Positions 55,133 through 59,426 of a DNA stretch of 64,000 nucleotides are shown here, in pieces. The stretch is from Calcarisporiella thermophila CBS 279.70 (Eukaryota > Fungi > Calcarisporiellomycota). Position 1 is the first letter of the stretch. Every line of letters begins with the position of its first letter. Under the pieces are notes generated by a model, which ran no database searches, was not told the DNA's origin, and worked only from the letters and a program-made list of their open reading frames with translations. The stretch is taken from assembly GCF_041956535.1 (NCBI RefSeq), contig NW_027192195.1, positions 412,150-476,149 on the forward strand, written 5' to 3'. Position numbers and translations under genes: made by a program.

Positions 55133-55876
55133 CGAACGAATAGAGCATGGATCTAGTTATTTATTCGAATAGCATCAATTTCTAATTTCTGGGTTGTCGT
55201 TGCTATTTCTTACATTGTTCGTTGTTTTTTTTGCTTTTTTCCTAAACGATCTTCAGGTTTGTCATTTGCGGTTTCTTTTATTGTCTATTATTTTCTTCTT
55301 GTGTTTTTGTTTCATTATTCCCTGATATCTCGTTTTACGTTGTGTGTCCACCCCTTGTATTTATTCACCCGTCTTTTCTAAAGCGCACTTAAGAGATTTC
55401 TGAAATCCCAAAAGTTACATAAACATCGTCCTGAGACATGTCATTTGAGCAGGGAGGGGCAGAGACTGGCTGAACTGGGGAAAGCAGGGAAAGGCGGCCC
55501 GCCAAAATCGAGCGCCTGGAGGGCGGGCGGGTGGTCAGGGGCGCAAAAAGCGAAGTAGGATGAGTGGCGTGAAACCGGGCATATTGTGTTGATGCAATAC
55601 TACGTACTTTTCAAACTCAGGGCCACACCTTGAAAAACGTGCCCTCGAGTCGTTCAATCAGTTTGGGCCAAAGCCGGGCGGTGATTGGGCGTGCGGCAGG
55701 GAGAGATTCTGGTAAAGACAAGAGGTCTTTTTTTATCATGCTCTCCGCAGGGCAGGCCTCCCGGTTCCTTCGCACACTCAGCGCTCCTTTGCATGCTGCT
55801 TTCGCCATTGCTGCTTCCCTCTTCCCTCTGGGCCCCTCTACCCGGTTTTCATTCATCGCCCTAATCCCATGGTGTC

Positions 55877-58800
55877 ATGACCTCCATTGTTCCTCTTATT
55901 TCGATGGGGCTCTTGAGGCTCTGGTTTCTGGCTCTCTTTTCGTGCTGTGTGGTGTGCTATGGTAGAGGTGAGGACGGCCATATTGGGCCCGGGGAGGGTG
56001 TAGAGCTCCGGTATGGGTGATTAACATGATGTTCTTGGTTTATGCATATACCCTAGACCATGTGTCGAAGCGTGCCCAGCGGGTTGGAGACAATATGACA
56101 CGGGTGCTGGGCGTCGGCGGGAGTTTCCCCCTTAGCATATACAACCTGTGGGCCGTCTCATACAACCAGCAGCGGAAAAATGAGGGTGTGGAGGTTCGCT
56201 ACGACGCCCGAGGCAGCGTGGCCGGAATCGAGGCCATTCTCGAGCCTGGCATCGTGGAGTTCGCTGGGAGCGAGTCCATGCTGAACGAGTCGAGCTACAC
56301 AGCCGGCGGCGATCTGCAGATGTTGCCGGTGCTTGCGGGTGCAGTCACCATTGCATATAACGTCCCCGAGATGATAAGCGCCAACTACCAACTGCAATTA
56401 TCGCGGGAGGCCATTGTTGGCATCTTTAACGGGACCATCCTCAGCTGGTCGCATCCAATGATACAACAGGCCAATCCTACATTCAAGGTATGTTACTTCA
56501 TGCGGCAACTCGAGTGTTTATTTTTTTTCCCTCCTGTCTACACATTGATTCATCATTCGTTCGACTAAACAATTTTCCATGGATGCGTTTTTTGCACCTT
56601 CACATCTGTATACGATAGCTTCCCGACCAGCCCATCCGACTGGTTGCTCGCAAGGACTCCAGTGGAACAACAAAGCTCTTCACTGCAGCGCTGTCTTCCT
56701 TTTCTCCCGACTGGGCCAGGACGATCGGCTCGAACGAGCTCCCCAAATGGCCACGCATCGACATCACGGCCCCCCTGAACAGCGGGGTTGCAAAATTCAT
56801 CTATGCGCTCAACTACTCCATCGGGTATCTGGACGACGCCGACTCCCATGAAAACGGCCTCTCCCACGCGATGGTCATCAACCGCCAGGGCCGCCCCACT
56901 TGGCCCAACAACACAAGCATCAGCAGCGCGATGAACGACTTCCAAGAGGCCCTCTACCAGTCTCCCACCTTCACCACCAGCTTGATCGATGGCCCGGGCG
57001 AGGCGTCCTACCCCATCTGTGGATTCACCTACTACATCATGCACCGGCGCAACTGGACCACCGAGGAGATCGCTCGCATGACCCTGCGCTACATCTGGTG
57101 GACCTACACCGACCCCTATGCGTTGCAGGTGGTCCAGCAGAGCCGGTTCGTGGGCCCGGTCCCCCAGATAAGAGAGCGGGTGCTCGAGATCCTGCGCACC
57201 GATTTTACGTTCGGCGGCCAACCCCTCTATGGGCGCTCGCCCTGCGACACCGGCTGTGCCAACGGAAATTGCCTTACCGACGGCGCATTTCATGCGCCCA
57301 GCGAGCAGTGCGTGTGTCCGAGCCAGTTCGAAAATGTCCTGTCCGGGGACTGCTCCGAGCCGGTGACCCCAGTGACGATTGAGTATGGATCGGTGGCGGG
57401 GGTGGTGTTCATCGTGTTGACCCTGCTTGTATTTTGTGCGGTGGCCGGGCTCATGGCCGTAATATGGCGGTTCAGGGAGCACCTGGTCGTGCGTTCCTCG
57501 AGCCCGTTGTTCATGGGACTGATGGCGCTGGGGCTGATGCTGGCGCTGACCAACGTGTTCTTCTACATGGGCCAGCTAAGTCCCTGGAAATGCATCGTGC
57601 TGCCCTATGTCTTGTCCTGTTCCTTTGGGCTGGTGTTTGGGATGCTGCTTGCAAAAACCTATCGGATATACGAGATCTTTGGTAGGTGAATGCGATGCTG
57701 CATTGGAAAGCTATGGGCTTCTGGTGGATGGTGCCGTGCGACTCACCCCCTCCCTTCTCTTTACCTTCTGATAGAAAACCCGCTGCTTATCAACAAGGCC
57801 ATCCCCGACAAGAACCTACTGATGTTTGGTGGTACGATTCTGGCGTTTGAAATCGTGAGTCTATCAACTTTTATCTGCTCTATGGGCCGAAGGGTTGACG
57901 GAAGATTGGGCTAACGATGGCCACTGATAGGTCCTCGTAACGATATGGATGGCGGTCGATTATCCGAAGCCGTCCATGATCACGACCGCTGCCGGGGAGC
58001 ATTCCCAGGTGTGCAATTCGGCCTCATCGCCCTTGCAAATCACCATGCTCACCCTGCTCTATGGATTCAATGCGCTTCTGTTGGTGTGCTGCATCTATCT
58101 TGCGTGGAAAACCCGTGGGGTCCACTCCTTCTTTAATGAGAGCCGCATCATTTCCTTCTGTGTGTATCTAGTCTCCATCCCCACGATCATCCTGCTGCCC
58201 GTCGTCTACATCCCCAATATTGGCGTTTATGCCCAGTTTTCCTTGCGCACCACCGTCGTCTTGATCTGCGTCGTGGCCACCACACTGCTCCTCTTTGTCA
58301 CTAAAGTGAGGCTCCTCCTATGGCCGCCCCGGGATCCTGAAGGGTCGACTACGTCGGGCCGTGTGTCAGACAGCTTAATGCTGTTTGAGGATCCTAACGA
58401 TCCTGCAAGTAGGTTCATCTTCTCAGAGGGCACCAGGGTAAACACTGCAACGGGCAGTTTGGCGGAGCTGCACCTTCCCACAGCAGCAACTCCCCGGGAG
58501 CAGTCTCCAAAGCAGAGTCCCGTGGACCAGCGGTGGACAAAGAACGTACAGGTAAGGGTTGGGAATGGTGGAGAGCAATTGGAGAAACTGCATGCGCTTT
58601 TAATCTCTGATCAACTCGCTAACGTCCCGATGTCCCCACCAGCTGTCTAGGTGGAATTTCCTCATGAAACGGTGCAGGCCCTTCTTTCCATGGAGACGGG
58701 TCTGCTTTATGCTGCTCAAGGAATACGATGTGCTGATGATACTACGTAGGATGCCGGATGGATCGGCTAAATGCATGCATATATTCCACGCATCCGCCCT

Positions 58801-59426
58801 CTCCTTTCATATGACAGATGATCCTTGCAGAGGGGTGTTGAAATCACAAGCGGGGACGTGGTTCCTCGAGACGAAAAGACGTGAGGATATCGCCGCATTT
58901 CTACAAATCTTTTCCGATAGAAACAGAGGGCTTGATGGAGGTAGCTGCATCGTTTTTTGTTGACTCTACCTCTTCCTCCCGCGGATTGGAACTGACCCTC
59001 GTGTCCATGCATTTTCTAGAGAACCGTCCGTTGGATGGCCAGACATCCAAGCCCTCTACTACTCCGGGAGTCACAGCGGCCGATGGCCGAGCCTCATATT
59101 CGGATCACTTTTCACCGACCTCCACCTTGAACGCCCCTTTCATGCTCTCTCAAAGTCGCGCCTCACCCTCGTCGCCCTTTATTCTAAACCGCCAATTACA
59201 GAGACTTGCCTCTGCCCCTGGCAATCTCAGCCACTCCCCCTCTTCCTCGAATCTCCAGGGATCCCCCGAGGGCTTTGGCAGCCAACGCCGCAAGAAAATG
59301 GCGGATATCTTGGAGATGGATATACTCAGTGATGATGAAGACTCTCACGGGGGAAGTAGACGCAAATCAACCGCCAACGCTCGGGCAGGTCCAGCCAACA
59401 GTAGGCCGGAATCAGAAAAGCACTAA
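55877..59426 (+). CDS. PstS phosphate-binding domain / EGF-like / class C (7tm_3) GPCR fusion with a probable C-terminal PH domain
   Basis: Seven exons (55877-55967, 56057-56487, 56619-57681, 57775-57854, 57931-58551, 58643-58940, 59020-59426) give a continuous 996-aa frame. PstS motifs: GGSFP, GSVAG, FAGSE, GAVTIAYNVP, RKDSSGTT, SIGY, SYPI. Class C 7TM motifs: RSSSPLF, LLAKTYRIYEIF, LAWKTR, FNESR. Confidence 0.9.

Follow-up and report, generated by a model that had tools for sequence, protein, structure and literature searches.

Phosphate recognition by PstS, the binding protein of the bacterial PstSCAB importer, is the best reference point for the gene described here, VTP21DRAFT_9284 of the fungus Calcarisporiella thermophila CBS 279.70. 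This gene lies in a 64,000-nucleotide stretch of contig NW_027192195.1 (hereafter the window, meaning that stretch at its full length), and it encodes a PstS domain fused to the seven-transmembrane (7TM) domain of a class C G protein-coupled receptor (GPCR). The passages of PMC6549937, PMC5381212 and PMC13614923 that draw on Luecke and Quiocho (1990) describe phosphate as held in PstS by approximately 12 hydrogen bonds, with Asp56 serving as the single acceptor, to which phosphate gives its proton in a short, low-barrier bond. According to the same passages, this short bond accounts for the exclusion of sulfate by about 10^5-fold and of arsenate by about 10^3-fold. When mutation suppresses the bond, discrimination against arsenate drops to only 50-75-fold, and natural proteins of the Ser type bind phosphate about 26-fold more weakly (PMC5381212, PMC13614923). 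A 2026 classification of PstS proteins includes Asp-type and Ser-type members only (PMC13614923), and some PstS proteins weakly bind phosphite or organophosphates (PMC13614923, PMC12421899).

The fusion architecture is also known. A PBP_like_2 domain combined with 7tm_3 was listed in 2012 for Spizellomyces SPPG_06488 (Krishnan et al., PMC3251606) and in 2016 for Plasmodiophora, whose fusion proteins were interpreted there as transporters (Rolfe et al., PMC4815078). In the literature that we searched, we found no functional characterization of any PstS-7tm_3 member, no description of a PstS site with Glu in place of Asp56 (a Glu-type site), and no Asp-to-Glu mutant of a phosphate-binding protein (D56E, D62E or D65E). 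A paper on SAR11 PstS likewise offered no relevant mutant. What is new here is a natural Glu-type variant of a known site, in a known yet uncharacterized receptor family. From the sequence, we believe that the codons in question probably specify the anion pocket of a flytrap domain that descends from the Asp-type PstS lineage and is carried by a class C GPCR. This pocket is predicted to be functional in phosphate binding, with Glu as a tolerated and conservative change.

The pocket residues were identified by searching the exons one by one, without joining them, against protein chains in the PDB by using phmmer. Exon 2 was aligned to Yersinia pestis PstS (2z22), whose mature numbering is that of E. 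coli PstS, and exon 3 was aligned to E. coli PstS (1ixh/1ixi). The matches are strong, with E-values of 5e-13 for exon 2 with Yersinia/E. coli PstS and 1e-19 for exon 3 with E. coli PstS. The original prediction had aligned four motifs by hand, and all nine of its ligand positions, together with its coordinates (exactly so for the Arg185-Thr191 segment), were recovered by HMMER (Table 1). Seven of these nine residues are identical to those of E. coli PstS even though overall identity is only about 27% (binomial probability 0.002); the exceptions are Thr10, which is replaced by Ser53, and Asp56, which is replaced by Glu103. The pocket therein is complete, comprising the helix N-termini, the Ser and Thr hydroxyls, Arg185 with its partner Asp187, and the carboxylate. 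Its N-lobe ligands and C-lobe ligands are encoded on opposite sides of intron 2.

To place these residues in a family context, we aligned 73 PstS domains of full length that were taken from the top 150 matches. The column of Asp56 contains Asp in 67 domains and Glu in six. As only these two residues occur, it is the carboxylate that is conserved, and its invariance across the family argues that selection acts on the acceptor role. The column of Thr10 contains Ser in 45 domains and Thr in 26. Thus, the replacement of Thr10 by Ser is real, as originally noted, but it is no departure from the norm, given that Ser is the commoner residue. The remaining ligand columns are 93-100% conserved, with Ser at position 38 in 72 domains, Arg at 135 in 71, Ser at 139 in all 73, Gly at 140 in 70 and Thr at 141 in 68.

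In the Calcarisporiella protein, PBP_like_2 stands behind a signal peptide and N-terminal to 7tm_3 in one polypeptide. Receptors with the same order of the two domains were found as about 30 cluster representatives, the sources of which are chytrids, an aphelid, a blastoclad, members of the Endogonales and unnamed metagenomes. In the alignment, 24 PstS domains are of this fused kind; the named ones come from the same four groups, and several have no source name. Asp occupies the selectivity position in 22 of the 24, whereas Glu is found only in the two Calcarisporiella copies. A different recurrent change within the same pocket is evident in many chytrid receptors, which keep Asp56 but exchange Asp137, the salt-link partner of Arg135, for Pro, Gly, Lys, Val or Ala; Pro, Gly, Lys or Val is present in P0009, P0016, P0025, P0028, P0029, P0031, P0033, P0034, P0064, P0075 and P0080. 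Unlike these many chytrid fusions, the Calcarisporiella receptor retains the Asp137 partner.

An AlphaFold2 model of residues 38-392, made from the 73-row alignment, is of high confidence (mean predicted local distance difference test score 94.8, predicted template-modelling score 0.91). The modelled domain has the two-lobe class II periplasmic-binding fold and superposes on solved PstS structures. The best 20 PDB matches returned by Foldseek are all PstS, with template-modelling (TM) scores up to 0.83/0.92 and root-mean-square deviations (rmsd) of 2.2-2.7 Å. Against phosphate-bound E. coli PstS, the TM scores are 0.81 (query) and 0.89 (target), and the rmsd is 2.4-2.5 Å. Comparison of a model with PstS-phosphate complexes had been suggested as a check of the proposed site. 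In the model, the ligand residues (model residues 16-17, 47, 66 and 148-154) lie at the C-termini of strands and the N-termini of helices, as in the PstS anion site. The earlier argument for a functional site, which relied on conservation across two exons, is therefore well supported, because the residue mapping, the placement in the model, the conservation of residues encoded before and after a genuine intron, and the near-invariant columns in 73 domains all agree.

Given that selectivity is set by the very position that has changed (PMC5381212, PMC13614923), and that weak binding of phosphite or organophosphates is documented for some PstS proteins as mentioned above, one might propose that the domain now binds arsenate, phosphite, sulfate, pyrophosphate or a phosphoester instead of orthophosphate. 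We judge such a switch to be improbable. All other ligand positions are of the phosphate type, there is no sign that the pocket has been enlarged, and the fold matches that of closed, phosphate-bound PstS. Furthermore, a carboxylate has been kept, which, given how the site is known to work, should still repel fully ionized sulfate.

The protein that carries this pocket was obtained in full as a public record (P0001), which was retrieved with exon 3 as the query from a library of 1.84 billion proteins. Its residues 1-760 equal the exon model that we read by hand, and the entire protein maps onto the window as seven exons separated by GT..AG introns. From the N-terminus to the C-terminus, the protein comprises a signal peptide, the PstS domain, a Cys-rich linker, the 7tm_3 domain and a long tail. 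Both halves of the PstS domain exceed the cut-off of 27 bits for PF12849 (PBP_like_2), and two segments exceed the cut-off of 33.5 bits for PF00003 (7tm_3), namely one in exon 3 (profile positions 2-101) and one in exon 5 (profile positions 131-251). The precomputed Pfam annotation of P0001 comprises the same two families. Among NCBIfam families, the best match is to TIGR00975, the equivalog for Asp-type PstS, with 200 bits over residues 31-395 against a cut-off of 205. Related fusions score similarly (204.6 bits for the paralogue described below and 201.1 bits for Jimgerdemannia), and TIGR02136, the other PstS subfamily, gives 34 bits.

Table 1. Features of VTP21DRAFT_9284 and its paralogue. 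Positions are those of the window except for the paralogue; residue equivalences refer to E. coli PstS.
Feature	Position	Strand	Basis or remark
VTP21DRAFT_9284, Calcarisporiella thermophila	55877-59426	+	996 aa, seven exons; P0001 100% identical to the exons of the window
Exon 2, N-lobe half of PstS domain (PBP_like_2 profile positions 8-126)	56057-56487	+	Pfam 51.2 bits; TIGR00975 85.9 bits; PDB PstS matches
Ser53 (Thr10)	56122-56124	+	exon 2, phmmer
Phe54 (Phe11)	56125-56127	+	exon 2, phmmer
Ser84 (Ser38)	56215-56217	+	exon 2, phmmer
Glu94-Pro95-Gly96, turn with one-residue insertion	56245-56253	+	
Glu103 (Asp56, proton-accepting carboxylate)	56272-56274	+	GAG; exon 2, phmmer
Intron 2, 131 nucleotides	56488-56618	+	GTATGT..TAG, phase 0; separates the N-lobe from the C-lobe ligands of the PstS domain
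Exon 3, C-lobe half of PstS domain, Cys-rich linker, transmembrane helices 1-3	56619-57681	+	Pfam PBP_like_2 37.8 bits, 7tm_3 63.1 bits; TIGR00975 95 bits; PDB matches
Arg185-Lys-Asp187-Ser-Ser189-Gly190-Thr191 (Arg135, Asp137, Ser139, Gly140, Thr141)	56649-56669	+	exon 3, phmmer; Arg185 codon 56649-56651
Cys-rich linker	57243-57353	+	within exon 3
Class C 7tm_3 seven-helix domain, residues 426-695	57372-58350	+	Pfam 63.1 and 59.8 bits; jackhmmer; exon map
Introns within 7tm_3 domain	57682-57774 and 57855-57930	+	exon map
Paralogue VTP21DRAFT_11006	G000:C8:419066-421407 (loci L002/L005)	-	full PstS-7tm_3 gene; public model ends at 518 aa

These comparisons make it possible to state how the Calcarisporiella protein resembles described systems and where it departs from them. 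With E. coli and Yersinia PstS (1IXH, 2Z22) it shares the two-lobe fold, seven ligands (Phe11, Ser38, Arg135, Asp137, Ser139, Gly140 and Thr141) and TIGR00975 as the best family. It differs from these importer subunits by having Glu for Asp56, Ser for Thr10 and an insertion in the turn before the Glu-bearing strand, and also by being tethered to a 7TM domain, by its eukaryotic signal peptide and by its introns. Moreover, PstC (TIGR02138) has no match in the Calcarisporiella genome, whereas all 14 of 14 control genomes matched. We therefore expect that the PstS domain serves no ATP-binding cassette importer and instead signals through its own 7TM domain. The Ser-type proteins, such as Clostridium perfringens PBP-1 and Synechocystis SphX, likewise are without the canonical Asp and have lower affinity or arsenate discrimination (PMC5381212, PMC13614923). 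However, they carry Ser where the carboxylate would be, use another proton acceptor and belong to TIGR02136, whereas the Calcarisporiella protein retains a carboxylate. Like the metazoan class C GPCRs, it has a 7tm_3 domain linked through a Cys-rich segment to an extracellular flytrap, and its 7TM part weakly matches CaSR, mGluR and GABA-B in a sequence search of the PDB. In contrast to those receptors, its flytrap is of the class II PstS type rather than ANF_receptor; neither the ANF_receptor nor the NCD3G family was found on its exons (Pfam, E-values up to 0.1), and their places are taken by the PstS domain and a short Cys-rich linker.

The Calcarisporiella genome contains exactly two PBP_like_2 genes. 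The second, VTP21DRAFT_11006, is located on another contig, is about 55-56% identical to the first and has a complete 7TM domain. It also has Glu at the selectivity position, likewise encoded by GAG. Its gene has no intron equivalent to intron 2 but has another intron after residues SDDL. The existence of two receptor copies makes a class C heterodimer possible. Relative to both the Endogonales orthologues and E. coli PstS, the two Calcarisporiella copies share the one-residue insertion noted in Table 1, which falls in a helix-to-strand turn seven residues ahead of Glu103.

The existence of a second copy is also relevant to the proposal that the site is a relic, in which case the flytrap would no longer bind anything and the receptor would be constitutive, ligand-independent or decaying. 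Members of this family are all annotated as hypothetical proteins, which gives this proposal some room. Nevertheless, we consider it highly improbable, because the reading frame is intact over seven exons with canonical splice sites, the two copies keep all nine ligand positions despite their overall divergence, and the ligand columns are near-invariant across fungi that diverged anciently.

The history of the Glu residue can be traced with the orthologues that exist in public data. The only close ones found are from Endogone sp. FLAS-F59071 and two strains of Jimgerdemannia flammicorona, with 41-50% identity, and all have Asp. The Endogone sequence was recovered with a profile built from four sequences, whereas a word-index search had missed it. 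In a maximum-likelihood tree built without the Asp56 column, the four Mucoromycota domains, which include the Endogone and Jimgerdemannia fusions, form a clade with a Shimodaira-Hasegawa-like approximate likelihood-ratio test (SH-aLRT) support of 100. Within it, the two Glu-bearing Calcarisporiella copies are sisters (SH-aLRT 91), and their Endogonales sisters have Asp. On the basis of this tree, Glu has a single origin in the Calcarisporiella lineage that predates the gene duplication. It required one third-base change, from GAY to GAG, and both copies have retained it. It had been asked whether Glu is conserved in orthologues: it is conserved in the paralogue within the same genome, but it is not in the Endogone and Jimgerdemannia proteins.

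Because 22 of the 24 fused domains and the closest orthologues have Asp, Glu is a derived state that is specific to the Calcarisporiella lineage, rather than a hallmark or property of the sensor architecture. It follows that Glu should not be taken for the adaptation that turned a scavenger into a sensor. The original prediction had suggested that Glu may lower affinity into a sensing range or shift specificity, and the family comparison gives no support for the idea of a sensing range.

A more general version of this proposal holds that Glu103 is an adaptive retuning of the site. The short bond would be distorted or lost, and either affinity would move from sub-micromolar to a micromolar or higher sensing range, or discrimination against arsenate would be relaxed. 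It is true that Ser-type proteins and mutants that have lost the short bond are known to bind less tightly and less selectively (PMC13614923, PMC5381212). It is also true that Glu has been retained by both paralogues over a divergence of about one substitution per site, although a change of one base would revert it. However, such retention is equally expected of a constrained carboxylate that is functionally equivalent to the original. Moreover, receptor-fused domains, which are sensors by architecture, carry Asp in nearly every case, as do the closest orthologues. We therefore regard adaptive retuning as possible but unlikely.

Additional evidence that bears on this question comes from other lineages in which the same residue is found, and Glu at column 56 has at least three origins overall in the tree. 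A Fabomonas protein has Glu in both of its PstS domains, a Naegleria lovaniensis protein also has Glu, and these three domains group together. Glu is also present in one Pseudomonas PstS. Among 35 homologues from 121 genomes of class Nitrososphaeria (Nitrososphaerota), one has Glu and 34 have Asp. The gene for this lone archaeal Glu-type PstS is flanked by genes for a dCache/HisKA histidine kinase and a response regulator, and PhoX is encoded close by (L007 4370-5677; L008, L009). The same genome has a second PstS of the Asp type. The contig ends beside the gene for this Asp-type copy, and its context is uninformative. A search for loci related to that of the archaeal Glu-type PstS recovered only that protein itself.

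The archaeal arrangement is suggestive of a signalling role and would fit with a retuned site, but it is a single anecdote. Furthermore, the independent Glu lineages show no consistent shared second-shell substitution. A broader conjecture is that Glu-type sites are a third natural PstS solution beside the Asp and Ser types. This solution would have arisen repeatedly (in the Calcarisporiella receptors, in Fabomonas and Naegleria, in the Nitrososphaerota PstS located by a two-component system, and in Pseudomonas), and its affinity or its phosphate/arsenate selectivity would differ measurably, in a way better suited to signalling than to scavenging. We consider this conjecture to be quite speculative and doubtful.

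The reading that we favour, namely a working phosphate site with a tolerated Glu, suggests a simple mechanism. The extracellular two-lobe domain would close around inorganic phosphate, whose proton would be taken by Glu103 in the role that Asp56 has in E. coli. Because Glu keeps the acceptor, phosphate binding should persist, and its carboxylate would still shut out sulfate, which has no proton to offer. Closure of the domain might then be relayed to the 7TM domain by way of the Cys-rich linker. With the additional methylene, the short bond may be either kept or lost, so that affinity and discrimination against arsenate could stay the same or fall to a moderate extent. Any effect of the Asp-to-Glu change on these properties would be at most moderate, and it would not be what makes the protein a sensor.

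Two points weigh against this reading. First, the extra methylene could disrupt the short hydrogen-bond geometry that underlies discrimination against arsenate. Second, the PstS domain falls 5 bits under the trusted cut-off of TIGR00975.

Several other observations were made in the course of this analysis. Upstream of VTP21DRAFT_9284, one Pho4-like motif, CACGTTTT, occurs at 55634-55641 on the minus strand, 236 bp before the ATG. This sequence is the core of the Pho4 site in UASp1 of yeast PHO5. We rejected it as a candidate regulatory element because it occurs in the window at the frequency expected by chance (two found versus 1.5 expected), and CACGTG is absent from the promoter.

PstS domains are also present in other unusual proteins. 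In Littorina saxatilis, P0164 (1053 aa, annotated as 'atrial natriuretic peptide receptor 1-like') has a PstS domain with the full Asp-type set of ligands, followed by kinase-like and guanylate cyclase domains, and so receptor guanylyl cyclases, too, may have acquired a PstS flytrap. Some long eukaryotic or metagenomic proteins (P0006, with 2386 aa, and P0014, P0015, P0018 and P0037) have two to four tandem PstS domains, with some ligand sets degenerate. A protein from Planctomycetia (P0152, 828 aa) combines protein kinase domains with a C-terminal PstS domain that has an Asp-type site.

The sensing of extracellular phosphate by eukaryotes is poorly understood, and a GPCR with a near-perfect PstS pocket is a testable candidate receptor for this ligand. 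Since the pocket is intact, phosphate is the first ligand to test, and the sole change among the contact residues that calls for attention is that from Asp to Glu at the selectivity position. In this regard, a single fungal clade that has Asp in Endogone and Jimgerdemannia and Glu in the two Calcarisporiella copies provides a clean natural experiment on the effect of one methylene.

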